15,304 bases of DNA from Octopus sinensis (Eukaryota). Position numbers and translations under genes: made by a program. How positions within the stretch are numbered: the first letter of the stretch is position 1; each line of letters starts with the position of its first letter. The notes below the pieces were generated by a model. The model saw only the letters and a list, made by a program, of their open reading frames with translations. It searched no databases and was not told where the DNA came from. Positions 1 to 15,304 of the stretch are shown piece by piece. The stretch is taken from contig NW_021825506.1 of assembly GCF_006345805.1 (NCBI RefSeq), positions 1 through 15,304 on the forward strand, written 5' to 3'.

Positions 1-278
1 CTGTGTTTATGAAATTTTGGTATCTCTACTGTAAGGCTTCATTTCCCACGCGCCAGCTAATTTATTTCGTCCTTAGTCGAAAGACACCTGTTGTTATGTC
101 CTGTTATTATTTTTATTGTATTTATAATTGTATTTATATTTCTGTAACATTGTCCGTTTTTCCGTCCTTGTTTTTGTATACATTCGCTGCTTTCTTCCAA
201 GGTATCTAATACTCTTAGCTTAGTTTTTCCTTGGGGCTGGCCAGATTGGAGAAATCTTGAGTATAGCCAGCCGAAATT

Positions 279-449
279 TCAAGGATAATCTGGAACTCGA
301 CTGAAGAAAGAAAACTTCGAATGATTGGTCCTTGTTTTCTTTGTATCGTCTATTGGATGTTTGGCGTTCCTTTCCATTTCTCTCATATTCCGCATGTTCC
401 GCTGCATCAAAGATGAAAGTGCTGAGACTGTGTCTATGTCTGCCGGAGA
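279..449 (-). CDS. Speculative terminal coding exon (56 aa, SPADIDTVSALSSLMQRNMRNMREMERNAKHP...RVPDYP*), product unknown
   Basis: Minus strand: GCTAAT branch-like motif, pyrimidine-rich tract and TAG at 452-450, then 56 open codons to TGA (281-279); AATAAA downstream at 117-112 and 66-61. The segment is non-repetitive and CpG-rich. No protein family recognised. Confidence 0.15.
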   Translation of the reverse strand, partial: SPADIDTVSALSSLMQRNMRNMREMERNAKHPIDDTKKTRTNHSKFSFFSRVPDYP

Positions 450-534
450 CTACGCGAACGATTAAAAGAATTAGCAGAAGCAAAGTACATGTTACCTGGT
501 CGCAGACTTTTGAGAGAGTCGTCTGGCTGTGTTT

Positions 535-1627
535 ACACCCACACACACATACAAAGACACACAGACATATACTCACACACACACAAAGACACACACACAG
601 AAAGACACACACACAAAGACACACAGACACACACATACAAAGACGCACACATACAAAGACACACACATACAAAGACACACACATACAAAGACACACACAG
701 ACATATACTCACACACTTACAAAGACACAAACACACAAAGACACACACATACAAAGACACACACATACAAAGACACACACATACAAAGACACATACTTAC
801 AAAGACACACACAGACTTAAACACACATTCAAAGACACACACATATAAAGACACACACAGACTTAAACACACACACATACAAAGACACACACACACACAC
901 AAAGACACACACATACAAAGACACACACATACAAAGACACACACATACAAAGACACACAGAGACATATACTCACACTCTCACAAAGACACACATACAAAG
1001 ACACACACATACAAAGACACACACATACAAATTTACACACATACAAAGACACACACAGACTTAAACACACAGATACACACACACACATACAAAGACACAC
1101 ACATACAAAGACACACATATACAAAAACACACATATACAAAAACACACACAGTCAAAGACACACACATATAAAGACACACACAGACTTAAACACACACAT
1201 ACAAAGACACACACACACACACAAAGACACACACACACAAAGACACACACATACAAAGACACACACATACAAAGACACACACATACAAAGACACACACAT
1301 ACAAATTTACACACATACAAAGACACACACAGACTTAAACACACAGATACACACACACACATACAAAGACACACACATACAAAGACACACACATACAAAG
1401 ACACACATATACAAAAACACACACATTCAAAGACACACACATATAAAGACACACACAGACTTAAACACACACACATACAAAGACACACACACACACACAA
1501 AGACACACACACACAAAGACACACACACACAAAGATACACACATACAAAGACACACACATACAAAGACACACACAGACATATACTCATACACAGACTTAA
1601 ACACAACACACACACACACACACACAC
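535..1627 (+). repeat. CA-rich minisatellite, base unit ACACACACATACAAAG (16 bp), with variant units and a higher-order repeat
   Basis: Many tandem ACACACACATACAAAG units with recurrent variants (CAGACTTAAA, CAGACATATACTC, CAAATTT). Confidence 0.95.
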
Positions 1628-1713
1628 GTATTTCACATGATCTTTCTACATATTTATTAACCCATCACAACATGATTCCTCACCGAATTCTAATAGCCTT
1701 TCTTTGACATTCT

Positions 1714-1748
<35 letters not shown>

Positions 1749-1765
1749 GACACACACACACACAC
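1714..1765 (+). repeat. (CT)n(CA)n compound microsatellite
   Basis: Directly visible dinucleotide runs. Confidence 0.95.
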
Positions 1766-1859
1766 GTACCCCCAGTATCACTGCCTCTACCATAAGCTTA
1801 TATTTATCTCTTCTCAGCATCACTTTCATCCCCCACAACCCCCTATCTACACTTCCTCT

Positions 1860-2322
1860 TTAGATTTCTGCTACTACCACATATTCCTCTCCTCTTCCCT
1901 CTTCTCCTCATCTTCTTCTTCTTCTCCCTTCCTTCTATCCTTCCTTTCCCGCCGTTCCTCCACCTTCCCCCTCCCCTTCCTCTACCTCTACTGCTATACT
2001 CTACTCTTTTTCATCGTCGTCGCCTTCCTCCTCTTCCGCTTCATCATCATTTTCCTCCTCCTCTACCTTCTCTCCTCATCCACTCCCGTCTCCCATAGCT
2101 CCTTTTCTTCCTCCTCATTTTCATCTTTCTCCTCCTCCCCTCCTTCTCCTCTCCTCTCCTCCTCCTCCCCCCTTCCCCTCCTACAAATTCGTCGTTATCA
2201 TCATCATTATCATCGTCACCCTTATCAATCATCATCATCATCATCATCAGTACTATCGTGATCTTCCGCCGCCTCCTCCTGCTAATCATCATCGTCATCA
2301 CCATCATCATCACCATCATCAT

Positions 2323-2354
<32 letters not shown>

Positions 2355-2381
2355 TCATCACCATCATCATCACCATCATCG

Positions 2382-2425
<44 letters not shown>

Positions 2426-2500
2426 GTGGACGTCATCATCATCATCATAACTTCCCACTCTACCCCTCCTCCTCCTCTTCCTCCTCCTCCTTATATCCTA
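1860..2500 (+). repeat. Polypyrimidine low-complexity tract (CTT/CCT) grading into (CAT)n and then (CCT)n
   Basis: C/T-rich ~1880-2185, (CAT)n ~2196-2450, (CCT)n ~2461-2490. Confidence 0.9.
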
Positions 2501-2665
2501 ACCCCCGCCCCCACCCACTACTCATCCCTGCATAAACCATTCTAAAGTCCGGATTTTTAAAAGCCCCACGTGACGTTTATTCCAGTTCTTTCTTTGGATC
2601 TCAGTAATTAGATCTGGAGCTGTTTATTAAGTGCTTCATTCAATTAGGAACTGGTGTCTTTCAAA

Positions 2666-3986
2666 CACCACCACCACCACCTCCACCACCACCACCACCA
2701 CCTCCACCACCACCACCACACCACCACCCACCACCACCACCTCCACCACCACCACCACCAACACCTACACCAACCACCCCACCACCACCTACACCACCAC
2801 CACCACCACCCACCACCACCAACCTACACACCACCACCACCTACACCACCACCACCACCTCCACCACCACCCCACCTACACCACCACCACCACCACCACC
2901 TACACCCACCACCACCACCACCTACACCACCACCACCACCTCCACCACCACCACCACCTACACCACCACCACCACCACCACCTACACCACCACCCACCTA
3001 CACCACCACCACCACCTACACCACCACCTACACCACCACCACCACCACCACCTCCACCACCACCACCACACCTACACCCACCACCACAGACACCACCACC
3101 ACCACCACCACCTACACCACCACCACCTACACCACCACCACCCACCTCCACCACCACCACCACCTACACCCACCACCACCACCACCACCACCTCCACCAC
3201 CACCACCACCCACCACCACCACACACCTCACCACCACCACCACCACCACCACCAACACTACTACCCACCACCACCACCACCACCACCTACAACCCCACCA
3301 CCACCTACACCCACCACCACCCCCTCCACCACCACCCACCACTACACCACCCCACCACCACCACCACCTACACCACCAACCACCACCACCTACACCACCA
3401 CCACCACCTCCACCACCACCACCACTACACCACCACCACACCACCACCTACACCACCACCACCACCTACACCACCACCACCACCTACACCACCACCTACA
3501 CCACCACCACCACAACCACCTCCACCACCACCACCACCACCTACACCACCACCACCACCACCACCTACACCACACCACCTACACCACCACCACCACCTCC
3601 ACCACCACCACACCTACACCACCACCACACCACCACCACCTCCACCACCACACCACCACCCACCACCACCACCTCCACCACAACACCACCACCCAACACA
3701 CCACCACCTACACCACCACACACCACCACCACCACCACCACCGCCACCACCCCACCACCACCACCACCTACACACCACCACCACCTACACCACCACCACC
3801 AACACACCACCACCTCACCACCACCACCTACCACCACCACCACCACCACCACCTACACCACCACCACCACCACCACCACCACCACCACCACTATAGCCGC
3901 CACCCCTACTGCCGTCACTATTGCTGTCACCGTCGTCACTGCCCATCGCCACTACTACTACTACTACTACTACCACCAACACCACC

Positions 3987-4027
<41 letters not shown>

Positions 4028-4515
4028 CACTACCGCCACCACTACCATCACCACAACCATCACCACTACCGCCACTACTACTACTACTACTACTATACTA
4101 CTACTACTACAATTACCACCACTTCCATCAACACCATCATAACTCCACCGCTACAAATAACGTACGGTACCACCACTACCACCACATCCATTACCACAAA
4201 ACGTCACCTCCACCACCACCACCATCAGCACCCCTTCCACCACCACACCACCACCACCACACCACCACCACCACCACCACCACCAACCACCACCCCCCAC
4301 ACCCACCACCACCACCACCTCCATCACCACCACCACACACCACCACCACCACCACCACCACCACCACACCACCACCTCACCACCACCACCACCCACCACC
4401 ACACCACCACCACCTCCACCACCACCACCACACCACCACCACCACCACCCACCACCCACCACCACCACACCACCACCACCACCACCACCACCCCCCCACA
4501 CCACACCACCACCAT
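2666..4515 (+). repeat. Long imperfect (CAC)n array with CTACAC/CTCCAC interruptions and an internal (CTA)n block
   Basis: (CAC)n 2666-3891, (CTA)/(CAC) ~3947-4108, (CAC)n ~4208-4515. Confidence 0.95.
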
Positions 4516-4586
4516 CAGCACTGTCATCACAAGCACGTCATCATCGGCACCATCACAGCCACAAATAGCAGCATTTAGTTGTTATA

Positions 4587-4660
4587 AGCGTTGTTAATAT
4601 TGTTGCTGTTGTTGTTTGAGTTGTCATTGATGTTGTTTTTGTTGTTGGCGGTGTTGTGGT
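4587..4660 (+). repeat. Degenerate (TGT)n/(GTT)n tract
   Basis: TTGTTGCTGTTGTTG-type repeats. Confidence 0.7.
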
Positions 4661-5116
4661 TTAACAGCAGGTCAAAGATAATGCAGTACAAATAAGACGG
4701 AAAAATGTTCCATTCGTGACCATCCCTCAAAGGTTAATTTATCTAATGCACCATTACCTATTCAGATGGCAAAGATTGATCTGAGGGAAATTTGGCAGCT
4801 TTTCTAGCAAGCCCTTTGACGAAATTCGCTAGAAATACATCTAAAAGCAAAACTCAAAACAAAAACGAGATACTTTCAACGGCCCATAAAACAGAAAAGC
4901 AAGTCTTTCTCTGATGTATATATATTAGTAAAAAGTAAGAGATTATTCCAAAACATTTACCAGTTTGCTCTCAGGTATTCAGAATATGTTATTCAACAGT
5001 TAACATATAAATCTAATGAAGTTCTTAGGAGATAAGAAATTAGGAGAATATTCCGTTGGATAATTCTGAATATATTTGCTTAACCTTATGGGTTTCCTGG
5101 CGTATAAATATCAACA

Positions 5117-5300
5117 AGATTAATAATAATGATTATTCCGAAGTAGCAAAGGCATTACGTTTAATTCTATAATAAGGTTGTAATTGCCACGATTACTAAT
5201 CGGTGCAACTGAAACGAGTGTTGGTCTTAAAAGGCAGACTATAATTATAGAATTTAATTAATGGTATTGCTACTTCGGAGTAATCCATATTTTTAATATT
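5117..5300. mobile_element. MITE-like fold-back element with ~55-bp imperfect inverted arms
   Basis: GATTATTCCGAAGTAGCAA...TTAATTCTATAAT (~5131-5173) is inverted to ATTATAGAATTTAA...TTGCTACTTCGGAGTAATC (~5245-5285); a third arm lies at 6632-6706. Confidence 0.5.
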
Positions 5301-5350
5301 GTCAACACACACCCACACACACACATCTACACACACATATCAAAGTAAGT

Positions 5351-5737
5351 GGATGGAAGCACTCCGTCGGTTACGACGACGAGGGTTCCGGTTGATCCAA
5401 ATCAACGGAACAGCCTGCTCGTGAAATTAACGTGTAAGTGGCTGAGCATTCCACAGACACGTGCACCCTTAACGTAGTTCTCGGGGATATTCAGCGTGAC
5501 ACAGAGAGTGACAAGGCCGGCCCCTTGAAATACAGGTACAACAGAAACAGGAAGTAAGAGTGAGAGACAGTTGTGGTGAAAGAGTACAGCAGGGATCACC
5601 ACCATCCCCTGCCGGAGCCTCGTGGAGCTTTAGGTGTTTTCGCTCAATAAACACTCACAACGCCCGGTCTGGGAATCGAAACCGCGATCCTACGACCGCG
5701 AGTCCGCTGCCCTAACCACTGGGCATTGCGCCTCCAC
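5351..5737 (-). mobile_element. Full-length tRNA-derived SINE (family A), 387 bp, with a 12-bp target-site duplication
   Basis: Minus-strand head GTGGAGGCGCAATGCCCAGTGGTTAGG (A-box-like, 5725-5716) and GGTTTCGATTCCC (B box, 5683-5671); exact direct repeat ATCAAAGTAAGT at 5339-5350 and 5738-5749. Confidence 0.9.
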
Positions 5738-5860
5738 ATCAAAGTAAGTACTTAAATGTGAAACAAGATGGGCAACAATAGTACTCGAATACCGGAGGTA
5801 GAGTAATATGCTTTATTATAACGAAAGCTGCAAAAACATCACACAAAAATATCACCAAAA

Positions 5861-5902
5861 TGTGGTACTCAGAGTTTCGCGTTCCCGTTCGTCGGGCAGT
5901 TT
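5861..5902 (-). ncRNA. Second hammerhead-like motif (antisense copy, partly decayed)
   Basis: Minus strand AAACTGC-CCGACGA-ACG GGAA CGC-GAA-ACTC T GAGT-A-CCACA: near-palindromic stem III, but an A-C mismatch at the base of stem II and a poorly paired stem I. Confidence 0.35.
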
Positions 5903-5914
5903 AGATTGAGGATT

Positions 5915-5950
5915 TGTCCGACGAACGGGAACGTGAAACTCCAAGTAGCA
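5915..5950 (+). ncRNA. Minimal type I hammerhead-ribozyme-like motif (U4C core variant)
   Basis: TGT (stem I) - CCGACGA (core, canonical CUGANGA) - ACG GGAA CGT (stem II, GNRA loop) - GAA - ACT CCA AGT (stem III) - A (GUA triplet, predicted cut after 5947) - GCA (stem I, one G-U pair). Confidence 0.45.
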
Positions 5951-5997
5951 GTTTTTTGTGATACTTTTTGTGATGTTTTTGCAGTTTTAATAATAAA

Positions 5998-6131
5998 ACA
6001 CACATACATATATATACATATACATACATCGTATTTGTGTATATATGTATGTATATATATAGAAACACACACACACATATATATATAAATACACACACAC
6101 ACACGCACACATATATATATATCCCCAACCC

Positions 6132-6185
<54 letters not shown>

Positions 6186-6195
6186 ATATATATAT
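5998..6195 (+). repeat. Mixed (CA)/(TA)/(TATG) microsatellites followed by (TATC)n
   Basis: Visible runs; (TATC)n ~6132-6184. Confidence 0.9.
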
Positions 6196-6631
6196 GTAAT
6201 GTAAGGGAAGAAAGTTAGTATATATACAGTATATTAAATACATGAAATAAAGAATTGTATATAAGTTTACATATAAAAAGATCTGACTTACAGAGAATAG
6301 GAATGATAGAGAGATACTACAAGTGGGGTGATATTTGCTAAGGTATTAACAGCTGTTGGATTTGTAATACTGTTCCTCGTCCCCTTTAATTCTCTCTGTA
6401 AATTCTTTGTATGTTACAAAAAGATGGCATTTTTTAAAGAAAAATAGCGTCACAAATAATTTGATTAGAAGCTGGAAGCTCAGAGAAAAATATTTTAAAA
6501 GAGAAAAGAACCTACATATATGTTTCAGTCCTATCCTCTAGTTGATGGGAATTTCAAAACATTTGGTTTAATGCTAGGAAAGTTACCACATTCAAACTAT
6601 ATAGTTTGAATTCAAACTATATAGTTTATAT

Positions 6632-6706
6632 TCGTGGCAATTACAACCTTATTATAGAATTAAATGTATTGTCATCGCTACTTCGGAATAATCCTTATTT
6701 TAAATA
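6632..6706 (-). mobile_element. Solo inverted copy of the left arm of the 5117-5300 element
   Basis: 6632-6664 is an exact 33/33 reverse complement of 5160-5192; similarity continues through GCTACTTCGGAATAATC. Confidence 0.75.
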
Positions 6707-6957
6707 TATATCTTATCTATCTATCCTGGAATCAGTTTCGTAAATATTATAGACAGTATTTGTCATTCAAAGTACACATCTGAATAACTAAGAGCAAATT
6801 TCTTCACTCTGTTGGCTCTTATTATCTGCATACACTACAAGAACATGGGCGGCACTTATGCACGAAGTCTGATATTTACTTAATATTGTTGAGTACGCAT
6901 GTTACTCAGACCTAACAAGGTACCTCAATTTAAGTACCTAATTCAATTGAATCTTAA

Positions 6958-7240
6958 TTCTATATATATATATATATATTTATATATTGATTATTCAGTT
7001 TTATACTTTTTGTGATCAAGTTATATGTTTTATAAAAATATATTTTATTTTTTTATTTATGATTTGGTTTATGTCTATCATTTTTGAATTGCATAATAGT
7101 GATTTTTCTCGAATTTTATATTATATTAATTATTATATTATATTATATATATTATATTATATATATATATATATTATTATACTATATATATATAATATAT
7201 ATATATATTATATATATATATATATATATTATAATATAAT
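6958..7240. repeat. (TA)n and AT-rich low-complexity tracts
   Basis: (TA)n ~6958-6985 and degenerate TA/TAT ~7120-7240. Confidence 0.85.
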
Positions 7241-7321
7241 ATACTTAGCAAAAGCAATAGAGTGACTAAAGGGCTGAGAGTTTCGTGGCACGAACCTCAG
7301 GGTTCTCGAGGTACTCTGTTG

Positions 7322-7437
7322 TCCTTACTAAATATTTATAAAAATACAGTTATTTTATGAAATTCTTAATTATCTTTCAGAATTGATTGAAACAGAGGCT
7401 GTGTATTTCAATAGAAATATGGGAACTAAAGGGTTAA
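7322..7437 (-). mobile_element. Terminal fragment of a piggyBac-like MITE
   Basis: Ends ...AAAGGG|TTAA (7434-7437), i.e. TTAA|CCCTTT on the minus strand, the piggyBac terminus signature; no partner end seen. Confidence 0.35.
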
Positions 7438-7812
7438 AGTGAACATTTTGTAAGTATGCATGCGTGTCTTAACTCTTTGCCTGTCTAAAAAAAATCCGTA
7501 AGTTTGTCCTAATCGCCCATGTTTGTTTTCCGACCTTTGGTTAGCCTTTGTTCCATACGCTCTGAGTAATACCAAGATCTCCATTTATAAGTTCCAAGTT
7601 ACTTTGGTGGTTGAAAAAGCAAAAAAAACAAAAAAAAACCCCAAAAAACAAATAAAACAAAATTTGGGATGTGGCATCCATTCCTCATTGATGAGGGATG
7701 GACGTCAGGGAAACATAATTTGTGTATCATATTGGTATATACAAGACAGGCAAAGGTTGAAAAGTGCGTTTTTGTCATATTTATCAATAAAATAGAATTA
7801 TTTCTATGGATT

Positions 7813-7984
7813 AGGCGCAGGAGTGGCTGTGTGGTAAGTAGCTTTCTAACCAGCCACATGGTTCCGGGTTCAGTCCCACTGCGTGGTACCTTGGGCAAGT
7901 ATCTTCTACTCTAGCCTCGGGCCGACCAAAGCCTTGTGGGTGGGTTTGGTAGACGGAAACTGAAAGAAGCCAGTCGTATATATG

Positions 7985-8040
<56 letters not shown>

Positions 8041-8162
8041 TATATTGGCCTGCTCGCTTAGCCAGCAGGTGGCCGTCACTTAAAGGTTAAAACAATGCGA
8101 AACGCATTGTGACCAGCGATGTGTAGCAACATCTGATAGCCTGTCGGTCACGGTGATCACGG

Positions 8163-8201
<39 letters not shown>

Positions 8202-8416
8202 TGTGTGTGTTTGTGTGTCTGTGTTTGTCCCCCTAGCATTGCTTGACAACCGATGCTGGTGTGTTTATGTCCCCGTTACTTAGCGGTTCGGCAAAAGAGA
8301 CCGATAGAATAAGTACTGGACTTACAAAAGAATAAGTCCCGGGGTCAAGTTGCTCGATTAAAGGCGGTGCTCCAGCATGGCCGCAGTCAAATGACTGAAA
8401 CAAGTAAAGAGAGAGT
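7813..8416 (+). mobile_element. tRNA/CORE-like SINE (family B) copy 1, with expanded internal microsatellite and a nested insert
   Basis: A box TGGCTGTGTGG (7824-7834), B box GGTTCAGTCCC (7867-7877), CORE-like CCTTGGGCAAGT (7889-7900), TA/TG spacer, 3' module ending CAAGTAAAGAGAGAGT; collinear with 9398-9832 and 12237-12627. Confidence 0.9.
8047..8163 (+). mobile_element. 117-bp structured insert within (TA)n, probably a 5'-truncated retroposon 3' end
   Basis: Absent from the other family B copies; (TA)n on both sides; several stem-loops; ends in the short tandem TCACGGTGA-TCACGGT. Confidence 0.5.
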
Positions 8417-9032
8417 ATTCGTAACAAAATGGAACGCGTTAAGCAAATGTAACCACTCTATAAAAGCAATGCATTGAAAACAAATGTTTTAGATACGTTT
8501 TTTTAAAGGATATCTGAATAAAATAGACAATGCATTGTGCCATTTTCGGGTTCGCTTGCTTAGGAAAGCTTTTACGATCTGGAATTGCTGTGAGGCGAAA
8601 GATGAAATGAATTTTTTCATTAATATCAATGATTTTCCTGTTAAGGAATTAGAGAAGCAAAATTTGTAATGTGATTTGGCATTTATGGTTGATATGCAAT
8701 AAATGCCAGATTGCCGAATAAATGGTCAAAATCTGAAATTAGGGGAGCCGAACCAGTTTATTAATTTGCTAATTACAAGCAATTTTAAACCCATGCTGCG
8801 TTGGTTTATAAATCAACCCAAAAGCCTCTGCCTTTTCCAGCAATGCCAGAAGAGGAACCTGTGTTGGGCGAGAATGTTTTGGACAAATTTCCAAAACAAG
8901 ATTTTAAGATTTACAAGCCATGAACTCGGATATAAAAAAGAAAATGCAAAGCAACTTCCGGTGTGATACGCATCAACGATTCTCATCCCTTGCAAATTGA
9001 ATAAATCCATTTGAAGTGGGATATTTTGATAT

Positions 9033-9202
9033 CCGATGCTGGTCTGTGTACGTCCCCGTAACTTAGCGGTTTGGCAAAAGAGACCGATAGAAAAAGTACT
9101 TGGCTTACAAAGAATAAGCTCTGGGGGTCGATTTGCTTTACTAAAAGTTGTGCTCCAGCATGGCTGCAGTCAAAATGACTGAAACAAGTAAAAGAATAAA
9201 AG
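9033..9202 (+). mobile_element. Family B SINE, 5'-truncated 3' module (more diverged copy)
   Basis: CCGATGCTGG...ACTTAGCGGTTTGGCAAAAGAGACCGATAG...GACTGAAACAAGTAAAAGAATAAAAGA matches 8250-8410. Confidence 0.85.
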
Positions 9203-9397
9203 ATTGATAGTGACTTTGCAGTAAGTTTAAATATGAAGTTAATTACAGTTTGAAGGCAAATCATGGAATGCGTTCATTTTCTTCTTCGTAGAATTTTGTA
9301 GGTTTAGAAATTGAGAAAGAATGAAAACATTTATAACGTTTCCAGGGAATCCCTACTTTGTGAAAATGTTTCAGAGCAGTGAATCGTTGCAACATTA

Positions 9398-9617
9398 ACT
9401 CTCTTTACTCTTTTACTCATTTACTTGTTTCAGTCATTTGACTGCGGCCATGCTGGAGCACCGCCTTTAATCGAGCAACCCGACCCCGGGACTTATTCTT
9501 TTGTAAGCCCAGTACTTATTCTATCGGTCTCTTTTGCCAAACCGCTAAGTGACGGGGACGTAAACACACCAGCATCGGTTGTCAAGCAATGCTAGGGGGA
9601 CAAACACAGACACACAA

Positions 9618-9666
<49 letters not shown>

Positions 9667-9832
9667 TACGACAGGCTTCTTTCAGTTTCCGTCTACCAAA
9701 TCCACTCACAAGGCTTTGGTCGGCCCGAGGCTATAGTAGAAGACACTTGCCCAAGGTGCCACACAGTGGGACTGTACTCGGAACCATGTGATTGGTTAGC
9801 AAGCTACTTACCACACAGCCACTCCTGCGCCT
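9398..9832 (-). mobile_element. Family B SINE copy 3, full length
   Basis: Reverse complement of 7813-8416 without the nested insert; (GAGTAAAA)n-like tail; head AGGCGCAGGAGTGGCTGTGTGG. Confidence 0.92.
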
Positions 9833-9912
9833 AACTGCAAACGATTTCACAAGCGTTCATCGATATTGATTGGGTATAGATATCTTCTATTGTTGTTATC
9901 TTCTATATTCTA

Positions 9913-10309
9913 CTTGCAGTATCACCCGGCGTTGCTCGGGTTTGTAAGGGAAATAACTATATAAGCATTTTTAGAAAGTTATAGCCAAAAACTAGCAAAA
10001 AATGCATTAAAAATGGAAAAAAAAATGATGGTAAATTTAAAACAAAATCGTTGACTCATCGTAGACATTTTTAGAGAGTTACTTCCCTTATATAATAGCG
10101 AAAAATGCATTAAAATGGAAAAAAATTATGGTAAAATATTTTAAAAATCGTAGACTCATTGTAGACGCGCGCTAATACCCAGAAGGGCTCGATATGAATC
10201 ACGACTATAAGATATCCAGTTTTGGTTAAACTGCACTGCAAAATGTGGGAGTAGTTAGGAATCTAAATCGTAGGAGACAGACACACAACTTCACTTTTAT
10301 ATATAAAGA
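9913..10309 (-). mobile_element. Non-autonomous Helitron H1 (397 bp)
   Basis: Minus strand A|TC 5' end at 10310/10309; 3' hairpin (plus 9925-9940 CCCGGCGTTGCTCGGG) 12 nt from a CAAG|T end (CTAG with one change); no TSD; short GACA repeat near the 5' end. Confidence 0.8.
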
Positions 10310-10498
10310 TATAGTCGAACGGGCAAAATAGAAATAGAGAGACAGCTAGACAGAGAGAAAGAAAGGAAGGTAAAGATCCAGAAAATAATCGAGTTGATTC
10401 AGAAAACTGGAAATTGAAACTTCTGTCGCCAGGTACGAAAGCTTAGCAAAAACAAGGAGCTGTTGACCCAAACCATAAGATTATTAAAAACAGAATTG

Positions 10499-10819
10499 GG
10501 TAAAGATCCCTTTCCGTCGTGAATGACCATACGATTGCACCTAGAAAGTTCCCATCCGAGGCACAAGTCCGGGAAAGGCTGTTTATGGATGACCAGCAGT
10601 CACCCATGCAAGCCAGTCTCCCCCTCTTTACAGCACTGATGTTATCCAAGGGAAAGGCAAAGGGCCCGATACAGCTTGGCACCAGTGACTTTGCAACTCT
10701 TTTCTACAGCTGAGTGAACTGGAGCAACGTGAAATAAAGTGTCTTGCTCAAGAACACAACACACAGCCCGGTCAAGGAATCGAACTCATGGTCGTGAGCA
10801 CTGAGCCATGCGCCTTCAC
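10499..10819 (-). mobile_element. tRNA-derived SINE (family C) with shortened head and a 6-bp TSD
   Basis: Head GTGAAGGCGCATGGCTCAGTG, B box GTTCGATTCC, CORE-like TTCTTGAGCAAGACACTT; GAATTG at 10493-10498 and 10820-10825; 10591-10810 is ~94% identical to 14383-14601. Confidence 0.85.
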
Positions 10820-10904
10820 GAATTGCATTCTCTTTAAAGAGTTACGCAGTATCCTCCAAAATATATAACACGTTGAAGGACTATAAAGTCCGTGTTATTA
10901 AAAT

Positions 10905-11368
10905 ACAAAATTTGATAGCATCTGTGGACAAAATTTAATAGAATCTGTGAACAAAATTTAATAGAATCTGTGAACAAAATTTAATGGAATCTGTAAACAA
11001 AATTTAATAGAATCTGTGAACAAAATTTAATAGAATCTGTGAACAAAATTTAATAGAATCTGTGGACAAAATTTAATAGAATCTGTGAACAAAATTTAAT
11101 AGAATCTGTGGACAAAATTTAATAGAATCTGTGAACAAAATTTAATAGAATCTGTGGACAAAATTTAATAGAATCTGTAGACAAAATTTAATAGAATCTG
11201 TGAACAAAATTTAATAGAATCTGTGAACAAAATTTAATAGAATCTGTGGACAAAATTTAATAGAATCTGTGGACAAAATTTAATAGAATCTGTGGACAAA
11301 ATTTAATAGAATCTGTGGACAAAATTTAATAGAATCTGTGAACAAAATTTAATAGAATCTGTGGACAA
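10905..11368 (+). repeat. Tandem satellite, 20 x 23 bp (ACAAAATTTAATAGAATCTGTGG/A)
   Basis: Exact 23-bp period from 10905 to 11364 plus a partial unit; variation is almost limited to the last base. Confidence 0.97.
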
Positions 11369-11938
11369 CCTAATTTTTTTTATAGAAACGTCTATCTTCA
11401 CACAGAGGATCGTTCTGGTCCAAGCACTGTTGCTAATGTGAAGTAAATAAATTGCAAACATCAAGAAATATTTCCATGGTATTTCTGCGCGTTCAATGTC
11501 CGTCCTCAATTCATCGACTGTTGCTGGGTTTGTATCTTAAGCTTTATCGTTTATCTCCATGAAAATAAGTGTCTCATGGTGTGATGTTTGGTGAACGTGG
11601 AGAGTATTCCTCTAAACCTCTTCGTCCAACCCACCCGTTTAACAAAATCTTATCAAGGTTGGCCTTAACATTACTGTGATAATGTTGAGAAATAAAATTC
11701 CGAAGCTTCTAAAGTTCTCTCGAAAACTTCACATGACAAACTGTCGTAGAGAGTTCAAATAATTGTGACCGATGATATTACCGTAAAAAAGATGGTTTAA
11801 TTAATTCTCTGAATGATAAGCCACACCATACTGTAATTCTTTGTAGATTTGAATTATGCTCCTCCGTAATATATGGATTCTCAGGTTCCCAGTAAATGCA
11901 ACTGTGGTGGTTAATTGAGCAATTTAATTTTAATATAA

Positions 11939-12061
11939 ATTCATATACATACATAGTCTTTTAGTACAACAAGTCCAAGAAATAATTTTTCTGTCGCTTC
12001 ACACCTTTCTCTCTGCCTCCTTCTCTCTCTCTCTCTCTCTTTATGTTCATCATTTGTTGTT
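11939..12061 (-). repeat. 123-bp segment, inverted copy of 14970-15122
   Basis: Unique-(GA)n-unique-TATG layout; about 8 substitutions outside the (GA)n. Confidence 0.85.
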
Positions 12062-12236
12062 CTAAACAATCTTTGTTGGAAAGTGTGCATCTTGAACACA
12101 TCTTGGAAAATTCCACTCTTTGGTCTGGATCAAATTAAATGAGTTCATTGACCATTCTTTGGATGTCTCTTTTCCGATGAAAGGGCTTTAAAATGCGATG
12201 GACTTTAGATCTTGAAATCCCTGTCTCTCGACTCAC

Positions 12237-12627
12237 TCTCTCTTTTACTCTTTTACTTGTTTCAGTCATTTGACTGCGGCCATGCTGGAGCACCACCTTT
12301 AATCGAGCAACTCAACCCCGGGACTTATTCTTTGTAAGCCCAGTACTTGTTCTATCGGTCTCTTTTGCCGAACCGCTAAGTGACGGGGACATAAACACAC
12401 CAGCATCGGTTGTCAAGCAATGCTAGGGGGACAAGCACAGACAAACAAACATATATATATATACGACGGGCTTCTTTCAGTTTCCGTCTACCAAATCCAC
12501 TCACATGGCTTTGGTCGGCCCGAGGCTATAGTAGAAGACACTTGCCCAAGGTGCCACGCAGCGGGACTGAACCCGGAACCATGTGGTTGGTAAACAAGCT
12601 ACTTACCACACCGCCACTCCTACGCCT
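12237..12627 (-). mobile_element. Family B SINE copy 4, full length with a short spacer, nested in the mariner fossil
   Basis: Collinear with 9398-9832; internal microsatellite only ~35 nt. Confidence 0.92.
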
Positions 12628-12770
12628 TGTGTATATATTTCTTTGAATCCAGACAGTACTTCCTTTCTAGCACTCTTTCTTGCTTTGTGGGGCTCGTCTA
12701 TGCCGCGGTCCCCTGGAGCCTTCCTTGGGCACATTCTCAGCAGTTCCATCTACTTCAAACTTATTTCTAA

Positions 12771-13161
12771 CTACCAGTATCGCCCGGCGTTGCTCGGGTT
12801 TGTTTCGACCCTTTAGAATTGGAATTTTTGAAAAGTAAAAATTTTACATTATGTAGCTTGTTATTCTCTTTAAGTGAACATTTTTCTGGTTGAAATACAC
12901 CGAAAAATGGCGACACAGCAGTAAAAAAAATCGTACAAAATAGAGATTTTCATAGAAAAAAAGCACCATTTCTATGTAAATAATTTTTGGTGCTAACATG
13001 GTCCAATTTGAATGTTTTCTTCTACGGAAGGAAGAGCAAGCCTTCTTCTATCATACTCTCAATTTTGGTCAACTTGCACCGCAGGGTCTCGGAGGAAATA
13101 GTGTTAGTTGAAGGCTACCAAACCTGCCACACACAGACAACTTCAGCTTTATATATATAGA
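12771..13161 (-). mobile_element. Non-autonomous Helitron H2 (391 bp)
   Basis: TC 5' end at 13161-13160; hairpin 12783-12798; GTAG|T 3' end; roughly 90% identical to H3. Confidence 0.85.
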
Positions 13162-13551
13162 CTAGCAGTATCGCCCGGCGTTGCTCGGGTTTGTTTTGAC
13201 CCTTTAGAATCGGAATTTTTGAAAAGTAAAAATCTTGCATTATGTAGCTTGTTATTTTGCTGTAAGTGAATATTTTTCTGGTTGAAATACACCGAAAAAG
13301 GGCGACACAGCAGTAAAAAAAATCGTAAAAAATAGGGATTTTCATAGAAAAAAATCACCTTTTTTATGTAAATAATTTTTGGTGTTAACATGGTTCGATT
13401 TGAATTTTTTCTTCTTCGGAATGAAGAGCAAGCCTTCTTCTATCATACACTCAATTTTGGTTAACTTGGGTCTCGGAGGAGATAGTGTTAGTTGAAGGCT
13501 ACCAAACCTGCCATACACAGACAGACAACTTCTGCTTTATATAAAGAGAGA
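13162..13551 (-). mobile_element. Non-autonomous Helitron H3 (390 bp), head-to-tail with H2
   Basis: A|TC 5' end at 13552/13551; hairpin 13174-13189; intact CTAG 3' end at 13165-13162. Confidence 0.88.
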
Positions 13552-13771
13552 TTCGAGTCATGATAAATCGCACAGATGGAAGTATTTGAAACTCCTTTCT
13601 AAACAGTCTTTGTATATCGACTGCGTTTCCGGCCTCCCAGTTGTACTTCAGGAATACATTTCCTTCGTTCAGTGTTTAGTTCCGTTCCCCATTTCATATT
13701 GTAAAAATCTAAAAAGAAATAGAAGTTAAATTATGAGCTGTTAAATTGTGTATATTTTTTTGGCAACACCT

Positions 13772-14705
13772 TATGTATGTATGTATGTATGTATGTATGT
13801 ATGTATGTATGTATGTATGTATGTATGTATGTATGTATGTATGTATGTATGTATAATGTATGTATGTATGTATGCATGTATATATGTATGTATGTATATA
13901 TGTATGTATATATGTATGCATGTATGTATGTATGTACGTATGAATGTATGCATGTATGTATGTATATATGTATGTATGTATGTATGTATATATGTATGTA
14001 TATATGTATGTATATAGGTATGCATGTATGTATTTATGTATGTATGTATGTATGTATATATGTATGTATGCATGTATGTATGTATGCATGCATGTATGTA
14101 TGCATGTATATATGTATGTATATATGTATGTATATATGTATGTATGTATATATGTTTGCATGTATATATGTATGTATGTATATATGAATTTATGTATGTA
14201 TGTATGCATGTATGTATGTACGTATGTATGTATGTATAAATGTATGTATGTATGTATGTATGTATGTATGTATGTATGTATGTATGTATGTATGTATGTA
14301 GTAGGTATGTATGTATTATGTATGTATGTGTGTGTATTATGTATGTATGTATGTATGTATGTATGTATGTATGTATGTATGTGACCAGCAGTCACCCATG
14401 CAAGCCAGTCTCCCCTCTTCACACCACCGATGTTATCCAAGGGAATGGCAAAGGGCCCGATACAGCTTGGCACCAGTGACGTTGCAACTCGTTTCTACAG
14501 ATGAGTGAACTGGAGCAACGTGAAATAAAGTGTCTTGCTCAAGAACACAACACGCAGCCCGGTCCGGGAATCGAACTCATGATCATGAGCACTGAGCCAT
14601 GTATGTATATATGTTTGCATGTATGTATGTATGTACGTATGTATGTATGTATAAATGTATGTATGTATGTATGAATGTATGTATGTGTGTATGTATGTAT
14701 ATGCG
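13772..14705 (+). repeat. (TATG)n microsatellite array interrupted by a SINE fragment
   Basis: (TATG)n 13772-14381 and ~14602-14705, with TATA/CATG/TACG variants. Confidence 0.95.
14382..14601 (-). mobile_element. Family C SINE fragment truncated at both ends, inside (TATG)n
   Basis: 12 substitutions and 1 indel against 10590-10810; lacks the first ~9 nt and last ~90 nt; no TSD. Confidence 0.88.
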
Positions 14706-14969
14706 TGCGTCTGTGTATGTTTGCGTATTTGCGTGGTTGTGCGTGTCTGCGTGGATGTGAATATACTTTCTTTGTTTTAAAATTTCTTTGTTTACGGGTG
14801 TCTTACGGGTGTTGGGTATTGTGTTCTGTCCATCATAACTATTAATTTCCTAACTCAATTGGGAAATATAATTTGCTTATTTCCCCTCCAAAACTAATTT
14901 CCTGGCAGACATTATATACATTAAACGACAATTATTGACACAAACGAAAATAAAGTAAAAAAAAAAACA

Positions 14970-14989
14970 AACAACAAATGATGAATATA

Positions 14990-15029
<40 letters not shown>

Positions 15030-15122
15030 CAGAGAGAGAAGGAGGTAGAGAGAAAGGTGTGAAGCGACAGAAAAATTACTTATTGGACTTGTTGCACTAA
15101 GCGACTATGTATGTATATGAAT
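14970..15122 (+). repeat. Partner of the 11939-12061 segment, with a longer (GA)n
   Basis: AACAACAAATGATGAA...(GA)n...GGTGTGAAGCGACAGAAAAATTA...GACTATGTATGTATATGAAT. Confidence 0.85.
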
Positions 15123-15219
15123 ATACATATATACATACATATGTATATACATATATACATACATACATGAATATACATATATACATACATATGTATATAC
15201 ATATATACATACATAGATA

Positions 15220-15301
<82 letters not shown>

Positions 15302-15304
15302 TGA
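15106..15304 (+). repeat. Mixed TATG/TACA/(TA)n microsatellite
   Basis: Directly visible. Confidence 0.9.

Follow-up and report, generated by a model that had tools for sequence, protein, structure and literature searches.

The window analysed here is a 15,304-nt stretch of the Octopus sinensis genome (RefSeq assembly GCF_006345805.1, contig NW_021825506.1, positions 1 to 15,304, forward strand), and its centre of interest is an inverted repeat at 5812-5997 whose two arms each carry a motif resembling a hammerhead ribozyme. We consider it very probable that this hairpin consists of two 3' ends, set head to head, of a Hydra-clade Penelope-like element (PLE), a class of retrotransposon, each with its hammerhead motif. 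No convincing protein-coding open reading frame (ORF) was found anywhere in the window, the remainder of which is made up of simple and tandem repeats.

The hairpin and its two arms

A repeat search of the window recovered both the inner arms of the inverted repeat (5845-5898 and 5915-5968; 54 nt, 83% complementary, 16-nt spacer) and its outer arms (5816-5847 and 5965-5996), and direct reading shows the innermost 27 bp to be paired throughout, including two G.U pairs. The structure described in an earlier note on this DNA is therefore real, and its sequence is as described there. The 186-nt unit has a predicted folding energy of -101 kcal/mol, compared with -37.2 +/- 4.2 kcal/mol for dinucleotide shuffles (z = -15.2), and none of 200 shuffles equalled it. 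On this model a transcript across the locus would fold as one long hairpin and not as either ribozyme, and the proposal that it might serve as a double-stranded RNA (dsRNA) substrate for ADAR or Dicer derives from that predicted fold. Co-option of the hairpin as a small-RNA or editing substrate, whether as a microRNA (miRNA) or small interfering RNA precursor or as an ADAR target, would be in keeping with such stability and with weak Rfam matches, of hairpin shape, to miRNA models (mir-196, 25 bits). All of the miRNA scores fall far under their gathering thresholds, however, and the locus is one of thousands of decaying copies with no sign of conservation, which makes such a role highly unlikely. 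The weak miRNA-model matches themselves were dismissed as artefacts that hairpins and microsatellites produce by their shape.

The plus arm reads TTGT-CCGACGA-ACG(GGAA)CGT-GAAA-CTCCAAG-TA-GCAG, with a stem I (TTGT/GCAG) of 4 bp, two of them G.U. The minus arm reads AAACTGC-CCGACGA-ACGGGAACGC-GAAA-CTCTGAG-TA(5868-5867)-CCAC, where ACGGGAACGC is stem II with its GGAA loop, ending in CGC; here stem I is absent in cis and stem II has an A.C mismatch at 10.1/11.1. Compared with the hammerhead core strand C3 U4 G5 A6 N7 G8 A9, six of the seven positions fit in both arms, and position 4 is C in each. G12, A13 and A14, the A15.1-U16.1 pair and H17 are present on both arms (in the plus arm, GAAA at 5935-5938 and U5946-A5947), and the type I layout of three helices, of which stem I is open and the other two are closed, is seen in the family consensus and in well-kept copies; stem II of the motif has 3 bp and a GNRA loop. 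The predicted cut in the plus arm, after 5947, falls where the earlier note had placed it. Its guess of a 7-bp ancestral stem I likewise agrees with the family consensus, in which AAACUGU pairs with GCAGUUU and helix III is a near-palindrome, ACUC-U-GAGU.

Matching a descriptor would not by itself be strong evidence, since a loose one (CNGNNGA, stem II of at least 3 bp, GAAA, UH, stem I of at least 4 bp) is not rare by chance, at 0.09 matches per simulated 15-kb window, or 0.01 when the core is restricted to C[CT]GANGA. It is the covariance-model matches and the genome-wide family, both described below, that place the motif far beyond chance. The features of the locus are collected in Table 1.

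Table 1. Features at and around the hairpin, named according to its probable Penelope-like origin
Feature	Positions	Strand	Remarks
Arm 1, 5'-truncated PLE 3' terminus	5812..5898	-	hammerhead-like motif, T-rich tract, AATAAA (complement of 5812-5817); core CCGACGA 5896-5890; predicted H17 5867; covariance-model match 5903-5858
Head-to-head junction (hairpin loop) of two truncated copies	5899..5914	.	repeat search and family copies
Arm 2, inverted 5'-truncated PLE 3' terminus	5915..5997	+	covariance-model match 5910-5955; CCGACGA 5918-5924; stem II 5925-5934; GAAA 5935-5938; GUA 5945-5947; AATAAA 5992-5997
PLE tail extension next to arm 1	5738..5811	-	kept beside the hairpin in 43 of 56 loci (L001-L056)
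Last bases of PLE tail extension, displaced by SINE	5338..5350	-	holds one ACTTACTTTGAT copy at 5339-5350
tRNA-derived SINE (short interspersed nuclear element)	5351..5737	-	box A/B-like head near 5733-5665; later insertion, outside the PLE unit
(CA/TG)n-type microsatellite, tail-side flank of PLE insertion	5296..5337 (approximate)	.	sequence reading
Compound microsatellite at the opposite flank: (ACAT)n, (TA)n, (CA)n, (ATCT)n	5998..6197	.	likely insertion target

A repeat family and its parent element

The hairpin belongs to a large family. When the genome (2.72 Gb in 13,516 contigs) was searched, the 186-nt query returned 1284 first-look candidates, with 40 scored places 73-83% identical to it over all or most of its length, and a degenerate 24-nt core pattern had 2233 exact matches genome-wide, compared with 0 in a reversed control. 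The family thus has thousands of copies. Alignment of 26 copies with their flanks defines the unit as the hairpin plus a non-palindromic piece of about 75 nt on one side only; in the window this piece, the tail extension, runs from 5811 to 5738 on the minus-strand side, and long copies (L069:9797-9853, L073, L083) have it too, following their 3' end. Microsatellites, among them (TA)n, (CA)n and (GATA)n, stand at both ends of most copies, and the junction points vary among copies. Well-preserved copies with a single arm (L035, L043, L048) share a non-palindromic body, followed by the arm and then by AATAAAG and (TA)n. The shared body is a repeat in its own right, with 888 first-look candidates and many differing 5' truncation points.

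A palindromic shape, short length, high copy number and TA-rich flanks would also suit a DNA transposon of the foldback or miniature inverted-repeat transposable element (MITE) type, whose likeness to a hammerhead would then be coincidental. We give that explanation almost no credence, because the single arms are the 3' end of ORF-bearing retroelements with a 5' truncation series, because the tail at one end makes the unit asymmetric, and because the junctions differ from copy to copy. In addition, no target-site duplication is discernible around the terminal inverted repeats, and a covariance model built from unrelated canonical hammerheads matches both arms.

The nature of the parent element can be read from a long copy, L083, which retains an ORF remnant. 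Its first part reads ...FLDVNLDL...RKVLxFNPAFNMAVKTNIGREF...CNCKDGTSCPLEGKC..GIVYRAKV, and after a frameshift it continues as YxG..FKTxFYSH...CDLCLLEK...LNQKRELLNSCRH. The remnant contains a CxCX5C linker (CNCKDGTSC), whose cysteine positions are invariant or nearly so in alignments of homologues, the series GIY...YxG...R...E...N expanded as GIVY...YxG...R...H...E...N, and CxxC and CxH motifs around the E and N (CDLC...E...N...CRH). Homologues of the remnant number 68 at E <=1e-3, the best being a hypothetical protein of Argonauta hians with 43% identity, and that protein used as a query has 1386 homologues at E <=1e-30, many of them about 700-750 aa long on contigs of 2.3-3.4 kb. Three further features come from full-length homologues: YRDDG and, at the N-terminus, DKT and an RW motif, both read in the full-length relatives P0070 and P0074 (SDKTRNLY, MRWRAFFF). 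An AlphaFold model of the homologue P0005 (mean pLDDT 78.6) matches the reverse transcriptases (RTs) of retrons, DRT systems and telomerase at E 1e-6 to 1e-4, and the best geometric matches of a model of the C-terminal half (P0050, pLDDT 83.8) are T4 EndoII, I-TevI and Hpy188I, all GIY-YIG nucleases. The RT of the element is thereby shown at the level of a modelled fold, and a GIY-YIG domain at the C-terminus is likely from its motifs.

These characters are those by which the Hydra clade of PLEs has been defined, namely a short element of <3 kb with a single ORF, a C-terminal GIY-YIG domain without CCHH, a CxCX5C linker, CxxC and CxH motifs around a conserved E and N, the change of DKG to DKT, and an RW(K) motif, together with (TA)n insertion, a readily found hammerhead near the 3' end and presence in Mollusca (Craig, Yushenova, Rodriguez and Arkhipova 2021, PMC8557442). 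The octopus element resembles these PLEs in having a single ORF in which the RT is followed by a probable GIY-YIG domain, in the linker and in CxxC/CxH, and its full-length relatives also have DKT and RW. Also alike are the shortness, the (TA)n-type targets, the truncated head-to-head copies, the one-sided tail, the 3' hammerhead and the molluscan host. It differs from them in its CCGACGA core and in a 3' untranslated region of about 1.3 kb with internal simple repeats.

Relatives of the element carry canonical hammerheads at the same place. A type I motif with the core CUGANGA lies 70-350 nt past the stop codon in L085, L086, L087, L088, L090 and L091, often with a second, inverted copy upstream, and in the full-length relatives L092-L094 it is found upstream of the ORF at a distance of 160-200 nt, in line with a tandem terminal repeat. 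In the common architecture, stem II has 3-4 bp, and after GAAAC comes a near-palindrome of 9 nt whose central base is unpaired (CUC-U-GAG, CUU-A-AAG, CAG-U-CUG and others), and then GUH. When seven canonical relatives were aligned, 90% of the cells were paired and 10 of the 13 pairs had changed on both sides, a level reached in 0 of 500 shuffles. The covariance model built from these seven (R1), none of which is octopod, matches the plus arm of the window at 27.1 bits (E 2.6e-6) and the minus arm at 19.2 bits (E 8e-4), the next-best match in the window having 10 bits (E 0.65); well-kept octopus copies score 36-41.6 bits, and a canonical relative outside the training set (L088) scores 50 bits. 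The stems also covary between the octopod elements, as stem I of the Argonauta element (UGGUUAU/AUGACCA) differs throughout from that of Octopus and its 10.1-11.1 pair is G-C in place of A-U, with pairing kept in both, and the segment GAAAC-UCUGA-GUA is identical in the two. By this comparison with its relatives, the octopus motif is a hammerhead by descent. The earlier note had identified the arms as hammerhead-type motifs and the element as Penelope-like, and both identifications are upheld, the former by the covariance model from canonical relatives and the latter by the position of the arm at the 3' end of an element with an RT and a probable GIY-YIG domain, together with the canonical hammerheads at the same place in relatives.

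Several results weigh against this assignment, and we set them out together. At the level of the RNA, the Rfam hammerhead models gave 0 matches in the window, either at the gathering threshold or at E up to 10, and no hammerhead model was among the best 150 of 209 matches for octopus copies. The minimum-energy structure of the isolated arms is not a hammerhead, which is true of a canonical relative as well. The stems hardly vary within the octopus family, which therefore offers no covariation of its own; at the closing pair of stem I, 100 cases divide into U-A 88, U.G 4, C-G 3 and C.A 5, and the C.A combinations keep the pattern from being clean. At the level of the protein, Pfam returned no significant RT or GIY-YIG match for the ORF pieces, a one-copy read-through, the homologues or the full-length relatives (GIY-YIG scores were sub-threshold, best E 0.038), and a sequence profile search of the PDB with the protein found nothing relevant. 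The fold matches to the GIY-YIG nucleases are weak, all with E > 0.1, and the RT fold was tested on a homologue, P0005, that is only about 40% identical to the octopus remnant, so that the Hydra-clade assignment consists of motifs matched to the text of the published description plus the RT fold of a homologue. As to the element as a whole, the shared body was followed at least 2.7 kb upstream of the arm in a walk through copies in which the 5' end was not reached, the tail of about 75 nt is longer than the 30-40 bp described for PLEs, and many hairpin junctions cluster about 20 nt upstream of stem I.

The Rfam result says little about the window, because for the canonical relatives L085-L091 the best 150 matches of release 15 at E up to 10 likewise include no hammerhead model. 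The expectation that descriptors requiring CUGANGA would overlook the C4 motif holds, and Rfam models miss even the canonical relatives. Pfam, for its part, identifies neither the RT nor the GIY-YIG in a protein family as large as this one, with its 1386 members at E <=1e-30. The clustered junctions may mean that a hairpin source element was amplified, instead of each copy having arisen by separate twin priming.

The head-to-head layout is itself a known product of PLE insertion. Insertions of these elements are heavily 5' truncated, an inverted 5'-truncated copy beside the 5' end gives inverted repeats, the tail is at one end only, and a bias towards microsatellites obscures target-site duplications (PMC8557442). 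Among the relatives, head-to-head pairs are found in L091 (1448 nt, 99%), in Argonauta L084 (619 nt, 99%) and in L088 (about 850 nt), and microsatellite flanks recur in Argonauta and in relatives from ENA; the earlier view that inverted termini are a PLE trait is in line with both the paper and these pairs. We picture the last 85-90 nt or so of the element as having been copied twice, head to head, with the 3' ends facing outward into microsatellite and one outward end bearing the tail extension, in which case the window hairpin would be the short extreme of the PLE layout. Such an inverted, truncated arrangement presumably results when both nicked strands of the target prime reverse transcription. 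In the source elements, the motif presumably gives weak, dimer-dependent processing of tandem or read-through transcripts, with a C4 core that is perhaps slow or inactive and a 9-nt near-palindromic helix III that would be able to form fully only between two molecules.

Another reading is that the family is a retrozyme, in which tandem hammerhead units yield circular RNAs. Animal retrozymes are short, non-autonomous, hammerhead-bearing sequences proposed to derive from PLE terminal repeats (bioRxiv 10.64898/2026.07.22.740005), and the palindrome of helix III would suit dimeric cleavage. Retrozymes are direct tandem units, however, whereas the octopus hairpin is an inverted pair; the arms in the window and in nearly all inspected copies are inverted or single, there is no tandem array at the locus, and a hairpin transcript would hide the ribozyme. 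That the family is a retrozyme is thus very unlikely, and we found no evidence for the retrozyme-like family that the earlier note had also suggested. Its interpretation is otherwise largely borne out, with the hammerhead arms, the Penelope origin and the family-wide C4 core retained.

The C4 core

The core strand of the octopus motif is CCGACGA in place of CUGANGA, and the change at position 4 is not peculiar to the window. Exact 35-mers across the motif carry C4 in 292 cases and T4 in 20, and T at the CpG of the free position N7 was counted 25 times. The T4 copies are what would be expected from neutral CpG decay of a C4 source, because the N7 CpG yields a similar count, and the 292 identical copies indicate that C4 elements were amplifying fairly recently. 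Judged from these copies, C4 is the state of the source elements and is family-wide, as had been proposed, and not a decay of the window copy. One hairpin copy (G000:C9:94783111-94783190) has T4, and hence the canonical CUGACGA, in both arms; it could reflect two independent CpG decays or a T4 template. Other repeats in the same genome have canonical CUGANGA with different stems (L045:2829-2880, L041:66-120 and 113-166, L038:1980-2046), and since these keep U4, the C4 state belongs to a single PLE lineage and does not characterise the genome as a whole. The two arms of the Argonauta element read CCGUAGA and CUGUAGA, differing at a CpG, so that the ancestral base at position 4 is ambiguous there, and each of them has U in place of A6, which is normally invariant. 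No further Argonauta copies were present in the protein collection searched. The departure at A6 hints that catalysis may be relaxed.

As far as the searchable literature shows, an octopod lineage of Hydra-clade PLEs that kept C4 as its standard core through amplification to thousands of copies is new, and it runs against the stated universality of canonical hammerheads in that clade (PMC8557442). Previous work on PLEs has already described everything else about the structure of the hairpin: the class itself and its occurrence in molluscs, truncated copies in inverted orientation, a tail, a bias towards microsatellites, a hammerhead at the terminus, and hammerhead pairs on opposite strands (PMC8557442, PMC4209133). 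The family-wide C4 core is the only modestly new point, and a natural U4C hammerhead is already on record.

Two further known systems can be compared. The minimal hammerheads found in the terminal repeats of PLEs (Cervera and de la Pena 2014, PMC4209133) are likewise of type I with a short palindromic helix III that implies dimers, and they likewise occur singly, in truncated PLEs, and in pairs whose members lie on opposite strands. Those pairs lie 100-700 bp apart, whereas the octopus cores are about 25 nt apart within one hairpin, and the octopus motif has C4 and not U4, A10.1-U11.1 and not G-C, and no bulged base between 9 and 10.1. The second system is a viroid in which the same single change of the catalytic pocket was found in a replicating element (Ambros and Flores 1998, as cited in a passage of PMC3088659). 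According to that passage, U4C 'considerably decreases activity in vitro', yet the viroid was still infectious. The viroid change is a variant within a population for which reduced cleavage was measured, whereas the octopus C4 is fixed in a retrotransposon family of thousands of copies and is known from sequence.

Does the C4 motif cleave? The hammerhead of intact source copies may work, cutting after GUA mainly as a dimer through helix III and thereby processing PLE transcripts. In favour of this, the remaining core positions, the three helices and the cleavage triplet have been kept in a family recent enough to hold 292 identical 35-mers, the stems covary between the Octopus and Argonauta elements, the minimum-energy structure of the youngest subfamily (L054) comprises stem I and stem II, and the natural U4C viroid variant was active enough in vivo for infectivity, as far as the passage in PMC3088659 reports. 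The same passage, however, has U4C strongly lowering activity in vitro, and the minimal hammerheads of PLEs are poor cleavers to begin with, mainly active as dimers (PMC4209133). Further points against cleavage are the U at invariant A6 in both Argonauta copies, the A-U pair at 10.1-11.1 in place of G-C, and a competing CCCG...CGGG hairpin; moreover, Naiad PLEs proliferate without canonical hammerheads (PMC8557442). On balance we hold a working C4 ribozyme to be a tentative proposition with distinctly less than an even chance. The competing hairpin of the C4 family pairs CCCG (the end of stem I with C3-C4-G5) with CGGG (stem II and loop), and it is seen in the minimum-energy folds of L055:1490-1541 and of window positions 5855-5906 on the minus strand.

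Alternatively, the motif may be a dead or nearly dead descendant of a hammerhead, kept for the folded 3' end that it provides, either for recognition by the RT in target-primed reverse transcription or for stability of the transcript. In its favour, both octopod elements show a relaxed 5' core strand (C4, and in Argonauta U6) while the helices, GAAA and GUA persist. The motif also lies about 85 nt from the 3' end, a region that holds RT-recognition structures in other retroelements; such structures near the 3' end are established for stringent pairs of long and short interspersed nuclear elements. Hammerheads may, in addition, be dispensable for the spread of PLEs (PMC8557442). Against this reading, GAAA, G8-A9 and GUA are strictly retained, for no obvious reason if only the fold were needed. 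It also counts against it that, to our knowledge, no RT-binding site of a PLE has been mapped. We place the retained fold close to, and still somewhat short of, an even chance.

It is tempting to speculate further that C4 is a functional natural variant of the core, one that octopod PLEs have kept for tens of millions of years and that is present in thousands of loci that CUGANGA surveys miss, and that the hairpins with twin tails form a distinct class of non-autonomous PLE that can be mobilised from the transcript of either strand while supplying long dsRNA in a lineage of heavy RNA editing. We consider this combination unlikely. What is at stake can be stated for both outcomes. Cleavage by the C4 core would mean that the hammerhead consensus now accepted is too strict and that surveys of animal genomes undercount ribozymes of the PLE type. 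If it does not cleave, a PLE has amplified to thousands of copies with a disabled ribozyme and an intact fold, which would bear on the open question of what hammerheads do in PLEs. For annotation, a short palindrome with microsatellite flanks in a cephalopod genome can be a pair of twin PLE 3' ends and not a MITE. For the window itself, nothing changes.

The window copy and its neighbours

Measured against the consensus of its nearest copies, the copy in the window has an identity of about 85%, a divergence of about 15%. In its plus arm most of stem I is gone and the palindrome of helix III is broken (CTCCAAG). It is an old, decayed relic that is probably inert, ordinary repeat debris in repeat-rich non-coding DNA. 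An expansion of PLEs in Octopus has been reported at a Jukes-Cantor distance of 0.2 (PMC13282606), which a divergence of about 15-20% for the window copy would fit.

The tail extension was later interrupted by the tRNA-derived SINE, which is 95% identical over 388 nt to copy L050 by BLAST and is bracketed by a 12-bp target-site duplication, ACTTACTTTGAT, at 5339-5350 and 5738-5749. Other copies of the SINE end in ...CCGACGGAGTGC, without ACTTACTTTGAT. A common 3' tail for the SINE and the PLE was considered and rejected, the shared 12-mer being the target-site duplication of the SINE insertion. ARAGORN, run over the window, found nothing, the tRNA-like head of the SINE being too diverged. Once the SINE is discounted, the PLE insertion lies between a (CA)n tract and the compound (ACAT/TA/CA/ATCT)n tract. 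The entire arrangement of SINE and hairpin recurs at L020 (82% over 722 nt) and part of it at L013, and because these loci have it in common, the composite was duplicated or moved as a block.

Traces of other PLEs were also encountered. The third-best match of the covariance model in the window, at 9903-9956 on the minus strand (CCUUACA...GAUAC...GUA; 10 bits, E 0.65), may be what is left of a hammerhead of another PLE after heavy decay, or a chance match. At L078:3-350 (minus strand), inverted just upstream of a Hydra-type copy, an ORF fragment reads ...SSFYGHPKIHK..., a motif that we take to be typical of the RT N-termini of canonical Penelope/Neptune-type elements, and the fragment probably belongs to a second PLE type. 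In Argonauta, L084 holds a second PLE-like ORF fragment at 6860-7300 (CNCRTRTICPG...VIYQCKV) and, downstream of it at 8874-8899, another canonical hammerhead (CUGAAGA...GAAA-CGCG-UA).

Elsewhere in the window, the tandem repeats include a 16-nt unit repeated 64 times at 541-1579 (ACACACACATACAAAG), about 1.85 kb of (CAC)n at 2666-4514, a 23-nt unit repeated 20 times with 95% identity at 10905-11368 (ACAAAATTTAATAGAATCTGTGA), and 0.6 kb of (TATG)n at 13772-14382.

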